Shown here: piece by piece, positions 28,032 through 34,038 of the stretch
How the letters are laid out: each line of letters begins with the position of its first letter
How positions within the stretch are numbered: position 1 is the stretch's first letter
Virus record (IMG/VR): IMGVR_UViG_3300032334_001259
Location: 124,001 to 188,000 of that record
DNA: 64,000 bases
Strand: one strand, 5' to 3'
Position numbers and translations under genes: made by a program
The notes under the pieces: generated by a model
Told to the model about the DNA's origin: nothing
Databases searched by the model: none
Seen by the model: only the letters and a program-made list of their open reading frames with translations

Positions 28032-28874
28032 ATGCAAAATTCAAATCCACTTGCTAAACATTTTCGTCAGCCAGCAGTATTTCTTAAACTGCCTAGTGGT
28101 GGAAAATATTGGGCACCAGATAGTTTAGACCTTCCACCAAATGGTGAAGTAGGTATTATGCCAATGACAGCCAAGGATGAAATACTATTACGCACACCAG
28201 ATGCACTTATGAATGGTCAAGGTGTAGTAAATGTAATACAAAGCTGTGTGCCTGCTATTAAAAATGCTTGGGCAATGCCAACTATAGATGTTGATGCACT
28301 TCTTATTGCTATACGTATTGCAACTTATGGTGAAACCATGGAAATGGATAGTAAATGTCCTAAATGTGAAGCAGAAAGCCGCCATGGATTAGATTTAAGT
28401 AGAGTTCTATTTGGCGTTAGAGCACCAAATTATAATCAAATTGTAGAAATAGATGGATTAAAGATTAAGTTTAAACCACTTAACTATGTGCAAAGCACTA
28501 AAAATAACATTGCTGGATTCGAAGAACAAAAGATTATACAGTTATTAAACAATGAAAACATTGATCCAGATACACGCAAAGCACAGTTTGATATGCATCT
28601 ACAAAATATTATCAAAAGTAATATAACTTTGTTGAGTGGTGCCACAGAAAGTATTACTACTGAAGACGGAACTATTGTTACTAATCCAGAGTTTATATCA
28701 CAATTCTACGATAATACTAACAACCATATTATTAAAACTGTTCAAGCAAAATTAAGAGAATTTGCTGATACAGCACAATTACCACCTACACGTGTGCAAT
28801 GTGAAGCATGTGATAACGAATATAATGTTAATGTAACTTTTGATTACGCAAATTTTTTCGAGCCACTATCTTAA
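28032..28874 (+). CDS. gp26: Baseplate hub assembly/tail chaperone (gp26-like)
   Basis: LPSGG, PMTAKDE, D.DALLIAIR..TYGE, two CxxC pairs, NFF near the C-terminus. Confidence 0.8.
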   Translation: MQNSNPLAKHFRQPAVFLKLPSGGKYWAPDSLDLPPNGEVGIMPMTAKDEILLRTPDALMNGQGVVNVIQSCVPAIKNAWAMPTIDVDALLIAIRIATYGETMEMDSKCPKCEAESRHGLDLSRVLFGVRAPNYNQIVEIDGLKIKFKPLNYVQSTKNNIAGFEEQKIIQLLNNENIDPDTRKAQFDMHLQNIIKSNITLLSGATESITTEDGTIVTNPEFISQFYDNTNNHIIKTVQAKLREFADTAQLPPTRVQCEACDNEYNVNVTFDYANFFEPLS

Positions 28875-29089
28875 CTCTCACCCAAGAAGAATTATTGAAG
28901 TTAGTGGCGGATTATGAGGGTGAAGTAAAGAGTATTAAAAAGAATATTCTTAAAATGTGTTGGTATATGCGTGGTGGTGTCACTTATGACGAACTCATGG
29001 ATATGAGCGTAACTGAACGTAACATTATCGGTAGCATTATTGAAGAAAACTTGGAAACTACTAAAAAGTCAGGTATGGCTTTCTTCTGA
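28853..29089 (+). CDS. gp51: gp51-like segment, probably made as a -1 frameshift extension of gp26
   Basis: Frame open from 28844 with no ATG/RBS at its 5' end; slippery T TTT TTC at 28853-28859; WYMRGG..Y.E...MS..ER motif. Confidence 0.65.
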   Translation, partial: FFRATILTLTQEELLKLVADYEGEVKSIKKNILKMCWYMRGGVTYDELMDMSVTERNIIGSIIEENLETTKKSGMAFF

Positions 29090-29098
29090 TCAGTTTTA

Positions 29099-29520
29099 AG
29101 ATGCCTACGGCATCTGTTCAGGGACTATCGTCCCTTCACTTTCTTTCTTTCTTTCATTTCTCTTCTAAGATTTAATATTAGTTTCATTTAGACTGGATTT
29201 TGGACATAGATTTCCTTAAGCAGGAAATCCATATCCAAACAGCTTCATTTGAGCTATCATAAGGACATTAGCAAACGGAACTTGAAACCAAGTGGGGCGG
29301 TTAGCCTGTACCCCTTCACATCCTGTAGATTTTACCAACGGACCTACTATAAACCCTTGCTAACGAACTTATATTAGTAGAGGTTGCTTTTTCTCAGAGC
29401 CTCAATCATTTAGCCTAACGTTTGGCCAAACGATTCCATCATAGCAATGTCGGGGTGCTACCAACCTTCAGTTAATACCTATTTGTGGATATGCTGCCTA
29501 AATTGCCTGTGAGCCAAAGG
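29099..29520 (-). ncRNA. Candidate large structured ncRNA of unknown family
   Basis: 463-bp gap with no ORF of 60 aa or more; several helices whose non-Watson-Crick pairs are G-U only on the minus strand; possible pseudoknot. Confidence 0.65.
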
Positions 29521-29552
29521 TGAGTTATAATCTATATATCGTAAAATTAAAA

Positions 29553-30110
29553 TTACCAGAGATTTTCTTCAAAGCCTAATTGTATTGCTATTCGTGTTTC
29601 TGGAATGTTTTCTACACTGTGTGGTACAAAAGCATTCAACAGTGTCCATTTATACAATGGAACTACAATACTGTCAATTTCTTTTACCTGGTCATACTCT
29701 AATTGTAGCCCACGTGAAAGATTAATAGAACTGTCAATTGCCTCGTAAAAAACAGTTCTATGATGTTCTCCGCCTGTTTGTATCAAATACATTAGTGTGT
29801 ATTTTCTTGTTCTGTCAATATGCGGAGCAACCATACTACCCCGCACTACTGTTGTTTGAGCCAAACTACAGCCATTAAACTTATCACTTATATTAGTTTT
29901 AATCCAATCAAATAGCTGTGGATGCAGTGATTGTTTATGAAATCTTTTGTTTTGCTCCTCTATATCATTACGAACTATAGTTCTGTCCATGTATGGTATA
30001 GTTGGATTTTGAACATAAGGATCAAATATATCTTGCGAAGTATAATTTAAAGTTAGATCAATTAACTGTGTTGGAACACTTGGTAAATTGTCTAATATCT
30101 TGTAATGCAT
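29553..30110 (-). CDS. Fe(II)/2OG-oxygenase-like (double-stranded beta-helix) protein
   Basis: HxD (PHID), distal His (PHSVEN) and Arg (TRIAI). Confidence 0.65.
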   Translation of the reverse strand: MHYKILDNLPSVPTQLIDLTLNYTSQDIFDPYVQNPTIPYMDRTIVRNDIEEQNKRFHKQSLHPQLFDWIKTNISDKFNGCSLAQTTVVRGSMVAPHIDRTRKYTLMYLIQTGGEHHRTVFYEAIDSSINLSRGLQLEYDQVKEIDSIVVPLYKWTLLNAFVPHSVENIPETRIAIQLGFEENLW

Positions 30111-30964
30111 TACTCACCCCTAATACTTTTAATAATTTTTATAAATTTGTTTTCACTTGTAATTTCTATTCTACCAAATTCATTAACAAAATCTTTCCAA
30201 GATTGGTTATTACGAATTGTCTTGATTTGATTGTTTATATTTTGAATTTGTTCTTGAGATAAGTTGGCACCAACTAAAACTATACTATCTTGCAATAGTG
30301 GTAGATCCACAGCCTTTGGTAGCAATTTATATACGCTTGGTATTGTGACACCATCTTTAACAATATCACTTTCACTACCACTAAACAAACAATTTACTTT
30401 GTCTAAATTTTTACCTAACCATTCACTATCAACAAGAGTATAATCAAATTCATTGCCTAGAATTACTTCTCTAGCCTTACCACTATTGCCTACAATTACA
30501 ATATTTGCACTGTCTCCATTAGGAAACGCACCTATGATTTTTTGAATTATATTATTGCTTGCTGTGGTAATTGCAATGTTTTTGCGAGTAGTCTTATCTA
30601 AGAAATTCTGCATTCCTAAATTAGTTTTATCTTTGCGATAACAAAGACTGTAACTATAATAGTATAGTTCTTGGATCACTTTAACATTATCACTATATGT
30701 TAGTTTACAAGCATCATCAACTACACCCCAACTACCTGTAAGATAAACTAATGGTTGTTTTTCATTCTCAATTGCATTTTTAACAACTGCACAATTTGGT
30801 AGAGCATTTATGGTATTTTTGATACCAGATTTTTCCTGTATTTCTTGTAGTATTGTTGCAGTTTTACCAGTAACTCCACCTGGTGGAACGCCAACTGTAA
30901 TATCAAAAGCATATGCATTTGATGCAAATAAAACTGCAAATAATGTTGTAATATATCGTATCAT
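30110..30964 (-). CDS. TctC/Bug-like periplasmic substrate-binding protein (divergent)
   Basis: AAGGAG RBS supports ATG 30964; signal peptide ending NAYA; VGVPPGGVT resembles TctC P..PGG.TD; follows tctA. Confidence 0.6.
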   Translation of the reverse strand: MIRYITTLFAVLFASNAYAFDITVGVPPGGVTGKTATILQEIQEKSGIKNTINALPNCAVVKNAIENEKQPLVYLTGSWGVVDDACKLTYSDNVKVIQELYYYSYSLCYRKDKTNLGMQNFLDKTTRKNIAITTASNNIIQKIIGAFPNGDSANIVIVGNSGKAREVILGNEFDYTLVDSEWLGKNLDKVNCLFSGSESDIVKDGVTIPSVYKLLPKAVDLPLLQDSIVLVGANLSQEQIQNINNQIKTIRNNQSWKDFVNEFGRIEITSENKFIKIIKSIRGE

Positions 30965-30974
30965 TCTATTCTCC

Positions 30975-32276
30975 TTAAAAATATAAATTATACACAATGT
31001 GTATAACTGAATCAAATTGTTGCGCCAGCAAAAACCCTAATACTAGTGGTAATAAGTCATGTCGTCGTAACAAAAACCCAATCGGTGCAAAAATTGCACT
31101 ACAAATCAAATAAAAAGAAAGTTGATTTGTATTATACCCCATTTGAAATACTGCAAATAATAACAAAACTATACTTAAAGTATTAAAAAGTCTTAATCTT
31201 TTAACCATTGCTTTAACTAAACTTGCAGCAAGCGGCCAACTGCAAACAAACCCAATTATATTTGCGAATCCAAAAATAGCAAATATCCACCAAAAATTAT
31301 TAACCAACCAATCATAACTGTAATTTAAACCACGAGTAGATGTAATATCATATAGTAGATATTCACTTGCATTTATTGGTATCGCAAAACAAAACAATGG
31401 AATAAAACTAGCAACCAATCCACTGTTATGTGCACTATCACTAGAAACCAAACCACGTATATCACCATCTTTGTTATATGTTTTACGATTAACAAACTTT
31501 TCAACAGCCCATGCAAAATTACTGCTAATAGTAATACCCAACGAAGGTATAAAACCACAAACAAAACCAATTATACTACCTCGCATAAAAGTATAAGGAT
31601 TTATATCAATAATGTATTTTTTGCTTTTTATGTTAACTAGATTTTTGATTTGTGCTGATGACGATAACATCATGGGTAAACTATATAGAAACACTAATAT
31701 AATAATAGTAGGTATACCGCCATATAGATAAGGAATATCAAAGGTGGCGAATTGTTGTTTTGTTACTGGATCATACCCTACTTTACCTATAAAATAACCA
31801 CTTACCAAAAATACCGCAGATAATAATATATTTTTACTAGTGAATATAGTAATAAGGTAAGTTAACAATAATATACAAAACTGTAGTTTGAAATTGTATA
31901 AAACAGAGTAATTGTTACCTATCCAAAAAATGCTACAAGCTAATATGACTGCTACAATACTACCTAAAAAACTTGCCATAGCGCCACTGCCTAATGCAGT
32001 ATTAGCTTGACCACGTAGTGTTAACGCATATCCTTCTTTGACACTTGGTAAACTAGTAGTTTCAGTTGGTATACCAAGTATTGTTGCACTAGCACCACCA
32101 AAATACTGTGTACATGTAACCATACCAATATAAAAACTTAAAACATTATGTGGGTCTAAATCAATTAATAGTGGATAAAACAATACCATAGCCAAACTGT
32201 TATGTAAGCCAGGCATAATTCCAACAAATAAACCAGTTGCGCACCCTAATAATGCAAAAAGTATTATTTCACTCAC
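30975..32276 (-). CDS. tctA: Tripartite tricarboxylate transporter large subunit TctA
   Basis: GIMPG, YFGG..ATILGIP..T.S....EGY, GFIPSLG, SDSAHNSG..FIPL..AIP; many transmembrane segments. Confidence 0.88.
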   Translation of the reverse strand: MSEIILFALLGCATGLFVGIMPGLHNSLAMVLFYPLLIDLDPHNVLSFYIGMVTCTQYFGGASATILGIPTETTSLPSVKEGYALTLRGQANTALGSGAMASFLGSIVAVILACSIFWIGNNYSVLYNFKLQFCILLLTYLITIFTSKNILLSAVFLVSGYFIGKVGYDPVTKQQFATFDIPYLYGGIPTIIILVFLYSLPMMLSSSAQIKNLVNIKSKKYIIDINPYTFMRGSIIGFVCGFIPSLGITISSNFAWAVEKFVNRKTYNKDGDIRGLVSSDSAHNSGLVASFIPLFCFAIPINASEYLLYDITSTRGLNYSYDWLVNNFWWIFAIFGFANIIGFVCSWPLAASLVKAMVKRLRLFNTLSIVLLLFAVFQMGYNTNQLSFYLICSAIFAPIGFLLRRHDLLPLVLGFLLAQQFDSVIHIVYNLYF

Positions 32277-33366
32277 CTAACAAATACCTTTTGCTCCATG
32301 TTCCAACTAAACCGTTGTGTATATTGTTTCCATTTATAAAATATGGATCAACATTATTTGAAATCCATTCTAAACCTGTAAAATATTCCGTAGCAAAATC
32401 ACTGTTACTATCCCATATCCACCGATTCTTTTCTTTTAATATTGATTTTTCTTTTCCTAAACTAAAAGTTTTATCACTCCAATATGGATAACATGCGGCA
32501 CGTACCGCAGAAAAATATTCGCCACCATTGAAATTACCATCATTATTGAAGTTTTTTTCTATAAATTCAAGTGTATAAGTTTTATTAATATAATTTTTCA
32601 CTAAGTGTGATTGTTTTATTGTTACTAATGGCGAGTCAGGACTTACATAAAAAGGTTCTAAACTTATTGGTGATATTGAATTATAACTATTTCCAAAATT
32701 ATAAGCATTAGTTACATCTAAAAAAGCACTATACCAAACACCATTTTCAAACCAAATTCGTGGTTTTTCTAATCCAATTATTACACCTACTTTATTTTTT
32801 TCACTCTTCTTTAACCAATCACTATTTTCAAAAATTAATTTTGGTTTACATAGTTGTTCTAGTGATAGTGATGGTTCACTTGTCATAAACCACTCTATAT
32901 TTGGCATTATACCTTTTTCAAATTGTGGTTTCATATCCATTTTTGAAACTTTTATACCATTAATGATAATGATTGAGTTAAGCAATTCACTACCAGCATT
33001 TAAAACTTCACTGTTTGCTAAATTGTTTTGTAAATCATAACTGCTATACCAATAAGCAACTTCATCTATTTTAATATTATTTTTGAGAAATACTTTAAGT
33101 GCATTACTGCTATCGCTGCCACCGCTATAAAGTAAAATAAGATAATCATACTTTTGACGCAGCTGTAATGCTCGTTCCATGTATAAATCTTCAATATTTG
33201 ATTGCGGTTCATTTTTCCAATCATGACTACCAAAAATATTATCATGGTAATAAAAACGTATATCATAGCTGTTTCGTGATTGCGCCTCTATAATAGTCTG
33301 TAGTTTGTTATAATAAATGTGTTGATTGTCTAACAACCAATGACCAAACTGTGCTGCATTACTCAT
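32269..33366 (-). CDS. PP-loop (adenine nucleotide alpha-hydrolase-like) ATPase, unknown substrate
   Basis: LLYSGGSDS PP-loop; start placed at ATG 33366 just after a -10 box. Confidence 0.75.
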   Translation of the reverse strand: MSNAAQFGHWLLDNQHIYYNKLQTIIEAQSRNSYDIRFYYHDNIFGSHDWKNEPQSNIEDLYMERALQLRQKYDYLILLYSGGSDSSNALKVFLKNNIKIDEVAYWYSSYDLQNNLANSEVLNAGSELLNSIIIINGIKVSKMDMKPQFEKGIMPNIEWFMTSEPSLSLEQLCKPKLIFENSDWLKKSEKNKVGVIIGLEKPRIWFENGVWYSAFLDVTNAYNFGNSYNSISPISLEPFYVSPDSPLVTIKQSHLVKNYINKTYTLEFIEKNFNNDGNFNGGEYFSAVRAACYPYWSDKTFSLGKEKSILKEKNRWIWDSNSDFATEYFTGLEWISNNVDPYFINGNNIHNGLVGTWSKRYLLGE

Positions 33367-33371
33367 AAAAA

Positions 33372-33400
33372 ACCTTAACAAAAAAATATATATAAGTCAA
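33372..33400 (-). promoter_or_regulatory. Sigma70-like promoter, leaderless geometry
   Basis: TTGACT-N17-TAAGGT-N5-ATG. Confidence 0.65.
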
Positions 33401-33409
33401 TTTTTGTTA

Positions 33410-33510
33410 GCAGTTTACTGCATACAGCACGGCGTCTCTTGGCTCTAACCAGATAAAAGGATCACTATCCTTTGCGTCGTTTTTATTGCTGACGCCACTA
33501 TGTGGCGTTA
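33410..33510. other. GC-richer structured intergenic element (candidate small RNA)
   Basis: Hairpins at 33410-33421, 33456-33473 and 33492-33508 plus an enclosing stem; TAAATA (minus) at 33517-33522. Confidence 0.45.
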
Positions 33511-33522
33511 CGAAATTATTTA

Positions 33523-34038
33523 TTATGCACAAGCAAGTGCTACAAAATCTTTATTCAATGACCAAAAACGATCATAATCCATAATTGCCCAACGAATATC
33601 TTTATACTGATATAGCATATGATATTCTACAAACAGCGGCACATCATAATGTTGGTCAAATTCCAATGCTACAAACTTGCCTTTACGGTTAAACTTCATA
33701 AACAATATATTAAAGTCACCTTCATCAGCAACATCCATAAGCTGATCTATCCAACCATCTAATTGTTTACAACTACCGCTGAATAGTTGATGAAATGGAA
33801 AGTCACCATAGTTTTTACATTCGCAATTAAACTTTGGAAAACTTTGCCCAGGTATAATATCACCTTTGAATGATCTTATTTGACCTTCATGTAATATTTC
33901 TTTACGTTTTGTATTAGCACCGCCAATATAAGCACCACTATTAGGAACACGGATAAATGGTTCACCATATAATTCTGTTAGGTGTTTGGCAACTTCACGT
34001 TCCCAACTATTGCCTTTTGTTTTACTTTTACTGGTCAT
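33523..34038 (-). CDS. Holliday junction resolvase-like PD-(D/E)XK nuclease
   Basis: SK.KG..WERE, RVPNSGA, GDII, ECK; ATGA overlap with gp46. Confidence 0.8.
   Translation of the reverse strand: MTSKSKTKGNSWEREVAKHLTELYGEPFIRVPNSGAYIGGANTKRKEILHEGQIRSFKGDIIPGQSFPKFNCECKNYGDFPFHQLFSGSCKQLDGWIDQLMDVADEGDFNILFMKFNRKGKFVALEFDQHYDVPLFVEYHMLYQYKDIRWAIMDYDRFWSLNKDFVALACA

Follow-up and report, generated by a model that had tools for sequence, protein, structure and literature searches.

Layout and conservation of a four-gene phage cassette

We analyzed a cassette of four intact minus-strand genes, tightly packed at 29553-33366 of a 64,000-nucleotide stretch of DNA (the window), which comprises bases 124001-188000 of the 338,435-bp IMG/VR virus record IMGVR_UViG_3300032334_001259, a record with direct terminal repeats. 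Because the SbcC-like gp46 of this virus shares ~50% identity with that of Pseudomonas phage PA5oct and 45-47% with those of Atu_ph07 and Phosso, we assign it, by sequence likeness, to the T4 superfamily as an uncultured jumbo phage; it is contained in DNA sequencing runs from freshwater and lake metagenomes. The genes of the cassette, named g1 to g4, are the following:

32269-33366 (-): g1, a 365-aa PP-loop (adenine-nucleotide alpha-hydrolase) enzyme
30975-32276 (-): g2, a 433-aa TctA-family permease with a GTG start
30110-30964 (-): g3, a 284-aa predicted periplasmic TctC/Bug-like solute-binding protein
29553-30110 (-): g4, a 185-aa protein with the predicted fold of an Fe(II)/2-oxoglutarate (2OG)-dependent oxygenase

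An earlier interpretation made without database searches (the sequence-only reading) had described an operon of overlapping or abutting genes at this place, and the open reading frames (ORFs) bear it out. We observe an 8-nt overlap between g1 and g2 (GTGAGTGA), a 10-nt gap between g2 and g3 that holds a Shine-Dalgarno sequence (AAGGAG ahead of the ATG at 30964), and a 1-nt overlap between g3 and g4 (TAATG), a set of junctions that points to translational coupling. The likely start of g1 is the ATG at 33366, giving 365 aa, and a form of this length that is 100% identical to g1 is also found in the protein collection (P0002); the mechanical ORF begins at a TTG at 33381, so that the ORFs with this start included fill 29553-33381. 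For g3, an alignment backs the ATG at M18 as the start of the 284-aa protein. The cassette is also as AT-rich as had been remarked, with a GC content of 30.8% against a window mean of 35.6% (standard deviation 2.0% over 3.8-kb windows; rank 3 of 301).

The order g1-TctA-TctC-g4 is kept at the same site in relatives L003/L004, L006, L009/L123, L095, and L136 (L-numbers are labels of fetched IMG/VR and Logan contigs and loci), with 38-60% amino acid identity. This site lies between the genes for SbcCD and a PDDEXK nuclease on one side and, on the other, a structured RNA candidate, a 64-aa ORF (orf64; 28895-29089, plus strand in the window), and the T4_baseplate gene that encodes a gp26-like hub (28032-28874, plus strand). 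All four genes are likewise present in L007/L008, a 318-kb phage contig, at 34-43% identity and in a different neighborhood, where no match to the hub, orf64, or SbcC was found around the cassette. Counted together, at least 6 further genomes of uncultured phages hold the four genes side by side, at 34-60% identity and intact in every copy, and the co-occurrence across phages on which the sequence-only reading had staked its case is thus borne out.

That reading had also named a possible undoing of its own proposal, namely that the genes were captured from a host tct locus and are decaying. In a wider form of this explanation, the cassette is nonfunctional cargo in which such a locus is joined by unrelated ORFs. 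A GC content low relative to the flanks does suggest a foreign origin, TctB is missing, and TctC is highly diverged. Against this stand four intact ORFs in at least 7 diverged genomes with conserved catalytic motifs, as well as the retention of gene order and translational coupling. Furthermore, the phage homologs of g2 are 432-437 aa long and 43-93% identical, and the closest cellular TctAs, of ~500 aa, are only 23-30% identical to them. By sequence comparison, the phage proteins form a tight, short, phage-specific clade that is deeply diverged from cellular TctA and has therefore probably been maintained in phages for a long time. Since conservation of the intact cassette across diverged phages contradicts it, we regard the nonfunctional-cargo explanation as exceedingly improbable.

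With respect to the surrounding segment, the stretch from SbcC to the hub (28875-34034 in the window; loci L010-L129) was sized in 48 distinct relatives and varies between 1.1 and 7.8 kb. The segment is a cargo hot spot, and the cassette is a cargo in this variable island of a freshwater jumbo-phage clade. Within the sub-clade of the window, the cargos of this island differ but stay on one theme: L087, L024, L083, L023, and L101 carry a short-chain dehydrogenase/reductase (SDR) gene, an NMT1-like binding protein, an ABC ATPase, and a permease together with g4-like and g1-like genes, and L127 carries a bona fide TctC (PF03401, 1e-41) with a g1-like gene. The enzyme pair g1 and g4 is the fixed core of the unit, to which different transporters can be attached. 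That nonorthologous importers replace one another while the enzyme stays the same is the best reason to think that the enzymes work on the imported solute.

The hot spot holds other cargos as well, among them radical-SAM enzymes, a SegE-type GIY-YIG endonuclease (L127), and unannotated ORFs of 400-990 aa.

Transporter proteins and enzymes

The four gene calls of the sequence-only reading hold at the superfamily level, as judged by Pfam, profile, and fold evidence. The clearest case is g2, a protein with many hydrophobic segments that matches PF01970 (TctA) with an E value of 2.2e-62 and 211 bits against a cutoff of 28.9, over profile positions 1-416 of 423, which places it in the TctA family. 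In searches of the GenBank phage collection (megablast, tblastn, and blastn), TctA matches were to host-like sequences at 23-28% identity, and no relative of g1, g3, g4, or the downstream RNA was found.

The protein encoded by g3 carries a signal peptide of the Sec type, MIRYITTLFAVLFASNAYA, along with a VPPGG motif. It gave no match to PF03401 or any other Pfam family, even at E <= 1, and none in PHROGs or NCBIfam, in keeping with the earlier remark that this TctC is highly diverged. Its ESM Atlas structure aligns to bacterial TctC/Bug clusters with template modeling (TM) scores of 0.80 and 0.79, and hhalign pairs its profile with a viral TctC cluster, among whose members is a PF03401-positive one (96.9%, E 1e-10). 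We therefore classify g3 as a probable TctC-like binding protein that is recognizable by profile and structure only. A pilin match to g3 from a PDB sequence search was set aside, as it is a low-complexity local match at odds with the fold evidence.

The absence of TctB, which had been noted for the cassette, extends to the whole 338-kb genome, with no match to PF07331 at E <= 1 and no small membrane ORF within the cassette. Precomputed Pfam hits show no TctB domain in the short phage TctAs, unlike some of the long cellular TctAs.

For g1, no match was found in Pfam, PHROGs, or NCBIfam. Its SGGSDS PP-loop is invariant at S86, G87, G88, D90, and S91 in 61 sequences, and an AlphaFold2 model built from 61 homologs (predicted local distance difference test [pLDDT] 93) has a Rossmann-like fold with the SGGxDS motif at the end of the first strand, as expected of the PP-loop superfamily. 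Foldseek matches this model with a probability of 1.0 to MnmA, TilS, LarE, NadE, and AsnB, matching only the common PP-loop core. In whole-chain alignment, asparagine synthetase B (AsnB), beta-lactam synthetase (BLS), and carbapenam synthetase (CarA) score highest and cover residues 1-360, and the tRNA enzymes cover only the PP-loop core of ~150 residues. In addition, the nonfamily neighbors of g1 in the AlphaFold Database and the ESM Atlas are "asparagine synthetase domain" proteins, with a TM score of ~0.5. On these models, the fold of g1 appears closest to the synthetase domain of AsnB and BLS, and we infer that g1 may adenylate a carboxylate and form an amide. At the sequence level, g1 shows no Asn_synthase (PF00733) domain in Pfam, and PDB sequence searches with the single sequence and with a profile returned only chance or PP-loop-motif matches. 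An N-terminal glutaminase domain is absent, as the chain begins MSNAAQ, lacks Cys2, and has ~60 residues before the helix that leads into the PP-loop.

The same comparison bears on the possibility that the cassette serves salvage of pyridine or nucleotide precursors, whereby nicotinate or a related acid would enter through the transporter and g1, in the manner of NadE or NMN synthetase, would amidate a nicotinate nucleotide to rebuild NAD+ during infection. Structural matches of g1 to NadE-type enzymes and a phosphoribosyl pyrophosphate (PRPP) synthetase neighbor in L147 and L151 are consistent with this; however, the NadE-type matches rank clearly below those to AsnB and BLS in whole-chain comparison, and no sequence-level similarity to NadE was found. 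Moreover, a 2OG oxygenase has no role in such a pathway, and the cassette contains neither a phosphoribosyltransferase nor NMNAT. We consider this explanation quite improbable.

The g1 family comprises 1,934 clusters at 50% identity by profile search, the clusters closest to it in the ESM Atlas are 99-100% viral, and no member was found in 50,697 GenBank phage records. On sequence grounds, it would represent a new, phage-restricted PP-loop family for which Pfam, PHROGs, and NCBIfam hold no model.

The AlphaFold2 model of g4 (pLDDT 93.7) shows a double-stranded beta-helix (DSBH) fold, and 39 homologs retain H97, D99, H164, and R173 without exception. H97-x-D99...H164 is a candidate facial triad and R173 a candidate 2OG-binding residue. 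Structural neighbors of g4 include the AspH/LpxO-type hydroxylase fold, TYW5, and ALKBH5. No Pfam, NCBIfam, or PHROG match was found for g4, and its profile returned no oxygenase among PDB sequences. Neither g1 nor g4 has a signal peptide or a membrane segment.

Neighborhoods of g1 relatives and the proposed function

A census of 72 nonredundant IMG/VR loci with g1 relatives shows a recurrent association with transport. A signal-peptide binding protein (TctC, DctP/TRAP, or NMT1/ABC) lies at most two genes from the g1 relative in 35 of 72 loci, and a transport or envelope gene of any kind (binding protein, TctA, ABC permease, DUF2061, Porin_2, or outer membrane protein [OMP] barrel) lies within that distance in 50 of 72. 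Oxygenase genes occur at most three genes away in 23 of 72 loci, where they are g4-like or encode a nitronate monooxygenase, a Rieske protein, a fatty acid hydroxylase or desaturase, or a halogenase. More than one g1 copy is present in 15 of 72 loci, in some of them as tandem pairs of binding protein and g1. Tripartite tricarboxylate transporter (TTT) and TRAP binding proteins are carboxylate specific; two of the three binding-protein classes found here therefore match the putative carboxylate-adenylating fold of g1. In a test for co-diversification of g1 with the adjacent binding protein, the Spearman correlation is 0.28, a value reached in 4 of 2000 global shuffles, although the signal loses significance with genome relatedness controlled (see below).

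Two further arrangements were observed. Loci L143, L154, L156, L170, and L173 hold two or three g1-like copies each, several of them near Rieske, nitronate-monooxygenase, amidohydrolase_2, fatty-acid desaturase/hydroxylase-like, and tryptophan-halogenase genes, and by gene content these multi-g1 loci look like small-molecule processing islands. In another phage group (L181, L186, L189, L198, and L207, and L168, L172, and L184), a conserved block has a Porin_2 or OMP beta-barrel gene immediately upstream of the g1-like gene, which is followed just downstream by the gene of a DUF2061 membrane protein and, in most cases, that of a radical-SAM/SPASM enzyme. Here the phages thus encode outer membrane proteins beside the PP-loop enzyme.

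Such partners could also be understood in terms of envelope remodeling or superinfection exclusion, with the enzymes modifying lipid A, aminolipids, polysaccharide uronic acids, or peptidoglycan carboxylates and with TctA and the binding protein serving this purpose or blocking a receptor or nutrient route. AsnB-like enzymes amidate carboxylates of peptidoglycan and of sugar acids, which counts for this explanation, as do the AspH/LpxO-type neighbors of g4 and the proximity of g1 relatives elsewhere to Porin_2, OMP beta-barrel, DUF2061, FA_hydroxylase, and FA_desaturase-like genes. However, g1 is most often accompanied by solute-binding proteins, which come from three classes of importer, and whole importers are found as well (TctA; ABC ATPase with permease). 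The lack of signal peptides and membrane segments in both enzymes speaks against it too, and the cassette contains no glycosyl- or acyltransferase. We regard envelope remodeling as unlikely.

Taken together, we consider it fairly likely that the four genes form a conserved, phage-specific operon for the uptake and modification of an organic anion, active in the infected cell. The sequence-only reading had likewise proposed a module that makes or modifies a small carboxylate and imports or senses it, and the import-and-modify part of that proposal is the best supported, by conservation of the cassette as a unit, by the exchange of importers, and by the transport or envelope genes in 50 of 72 loci; its RNA-modifying alternative and its promoter are not supported (see below), and the purposes it had offered for the module, namely nutrient capture, signaling, and anti-defense, are conjectural. 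Under the uptake-and-modification model, g3 would be exported to the periplasm, as its signal peptide suggests, and would bind an organic anion in the manner of TctC/Bug proteins before passing it to g2, which would import it by means of the membrane ion gradient. TctB would be either unneeded or borrowed from the host. In the cytoplasm, g1 would turn a carboxylate on the imported compound into an acyl-adenylate and then into an amide, or would otherwise trap the compound; judging from its fold and motif, and lacking a glutaminase domain, it would rely on free ammonia or another amine, or else on a nucleophile within the molecule. Finally, g4 would hydroxylate or oxidize the same compound or its product, as its fold and conserved triad suggest. 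Candidate ligand classes, drawn solely from likeness to characterized Bug, TRAP, and NMT1 proteins, include acidic amino acids, sulfonated acids, and acids of the pyridine or aromatic type, and the pay-off for the phage may lie in the supply of a nutrient or cofactor or in the making of a specialized metabolite.

Several observations weigh against this model. The likeness of g1 to AsnB is by structure only and is moderate (Z 11.3, root mean square deviation 5.8 A), and thiolation or other PP-loop chemistry by g1 is accordingly possible. TctB, a usual TTT component, is absent from the genome, ~30% of the g1 loci have no transport gene nearby, and envelope-type genes are found beside g1 relatives, as described above. 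Co-diversification of g1 with its binding protein is weak when genome relatedness is controlled, with 146 of 2000 within-locus shuffles reaching the observed value. Lastly, the sole "RNA-Seq" runs that contain the region are probably DNA, and their coverage is restricted to the conserved RNA element of relatives.

Compared with known systems, the cassette resembles the TTT family (TctABC/Bug, TC 2.A.80) in having a TctA permease (PF01970) beside a signal-peptide protein of probable TctC fold, and thus in the logic of binding-protein-dependent secondary transport. It differs in that it lacks TctB, has a TctA that is ~65 aa shorter and 23-30% identical and a TctC that lies beyond the Pfam model, and is phage encoded along with two enzymes. 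The arrangement in L087, L024, and L083, where an NMT1 binding protein, an ABC ATPase, and a permease are followed by a gene of 2OG-oxygenase fold, recalls the import-then-oxygenate order of tauABCD-type operons; unlike those, g4 is outside TauD/TfdA, a PP-loop enzyme and an SDR are added, and nothing indicates a sulfonate. Fe(II)/2OG hydroxylases such as caprazamycin Cpz10, proline 3-hydroxylase, and AspH/LpxO-type enzymes are only 7-18% identical to g4, which lacks Pfam membership. Similarly, g1 differs from class II AsnB-like enzymes (AsnB, BLS, CarA, and TsnB9) in its ~10% identity, its lack of an Asn_synthase Pfam match, and its lack of a glutaminase domain.

Clavam and carbapenem biosynthesis pair BLS or CarA with a 2OG oxygenase. 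By analogy, the g1 family might mark a hitherto unnoticed phage strategy in which the phage's own binding proteins, at times with permeases or porins, capture particular organic acids, and an enzyme like AsnB or BLS, together with an oxygenase, turns them into a specialized product of the amide, lactam, or hydroxamate type. The oxygenase partner here is a small 185-aa DSBH protein and not an enzyme of the clavaminate-synthase type. We hold this extension to be unlikely; if true, the product would be a phage-directed bioactive or signaling metabolite and not a simple nutrient.

Phages are known to encode parts of host-type uptake systems as auxiliary metabolic genes (AMGs), such as the phosphate-binding protein PstS of cyanophages. 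A "tctA" domain match was noted as a putative AMG in SUP05 viruses (PMC4164917), and in the literature on phage TctC/TctA modules we found only listings of tctA as a putative viral AMG with no assigned role. The usual uptake AMGs are single borrowed parts, whereas the cassette described here combines a complete secondary transporter, permease and binding protein, with two dedicated enzymes in a conserved unit whose core recurs with other importers. This enzyme core turns up again in ~70 uncultured phage loci beside porins and binding proteins of the TTT, TRAP, and ABC types, which suggests that large aquatic phages have a widespread, as yet unannotated way of reprogramming what the host cell takes up and makes. 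It further gives a handle for assigning a function to the g1 family with its ~1,900 clusters.

Flanking RNA and upstream region

Two elements outside the genes flank the cassette:

29101-29521 (-): structured RNA candidate of ~420 nt, adjoining the cassette but outside it; a core element of the clade
33367-33522 (-): intergenic region that separates g1 from the PDDEXK-nuclease gene upstream of it, with hairpins and TTGACT

Structured elements on both sides had been claimed from the sequence, and the downstream one is well supported. The RNA candidate shares 84-93% nucleotide identity with its closest relatives, whose cassette proteins, where present, are only 38-60% identical. RNAalifold analysis of 22 diverse copies yields 25 pairs, of which 14 show compensatory double changes, and the balance of GU/UG over AC/CA (122 versus 51 cells) favors the minus strand, which is that of the operon. 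Local folds include a long-range stem and several hairpins with GNRA-type loops. Searches with the 4,227 covariance models of Rfam gave nothing at the gathering score in the window and only chance-level hairpins at E <= 10; no tRNA or tmRNA match was found for the element, and no GenBank phage carries it. We consider it a real, covarying structured RNA candidate that belongs to the core of the clade, and it may constitute a new class of large viral RNA.

The position of this RNA 30 nt downstream of the cassette is what makes RNA modification conceivable as the function of the two enzymes, with g1 and g4 carrying out tRNA thiolation or lysidine-type PP-loop chemistry and RNA hydroxylation, possibly on the RNA itself, as the sequence-only reading had offered as an alternative. 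The inclusion of MnmA, TilS, and TtuA among the top Foldseek PP-loop matches of g1, and of TYW5 and ALKBH5 among those of g4, is consistent with this. As set out above, however, the tRNA enzymes match g1 in its PP-loop core only, and AsnB, BLS, and CarA extend over residues 1-360; g1 has no recognizable RNA-binding domain. The RNA also occurs independently of the cassette. Its 20-mer GGCTCTGRGAAAAAGCAACC is found in >120 IMG/VR contigs with the cassette present or absent, only 12 fetched loci with the RNA hold all four cassette genes, and the RNA stays in minimal islands of 1.1 kb without cargo. The neighbors identified for it in the fetched loci are SbcC and/or the baseplate hub, both of which go unmatched around the L007/L008 cassette. 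Being present with or without the cassette, the RNA is therefore not a partner of the cassette and not the specific target of its enzymes. RNA modification moreover offers no reason why binding proteins and importers should so consistently accompany the enzymes, and we judge it very improbable.

On the other side, the upstream region is conserved at the nucleotide level in L006 and L009; in L004, an additional gene of 341 aa has been inserted into it. It contains the hairpins ACGCCAC-ATA-GTGGCGT and AAGGAT-AGTG-ATCCTT, in agreement with the structure claimed for this flank, and a conserved TTGACT at 33400-33395 (TTGAC(T/A) across relatives). The sigma70-type promoter that had been ascribed to the cassette is not supported by these data, as a scan for promoter and terminator sites did not exceed shuffled sequences (28 sigma-70 consensus sites versus 29.0 +/- 4.7), and the sole candidate -10 box for the conserved TTGAC(T/A) overlaps the ribosome-binding region. 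The region is, from its sequence features, a possible regulatory or terminator region.

As to the remaining neighbors of the RNA, orf64 is conserved, lies on its hub side, and accompanies the T4_baseplate hub gene in 62 fetched loci, with no family match. Directly upstream of the RNA, a 141-aa ORF replaces the PDDEXK nuclease in most relatives.

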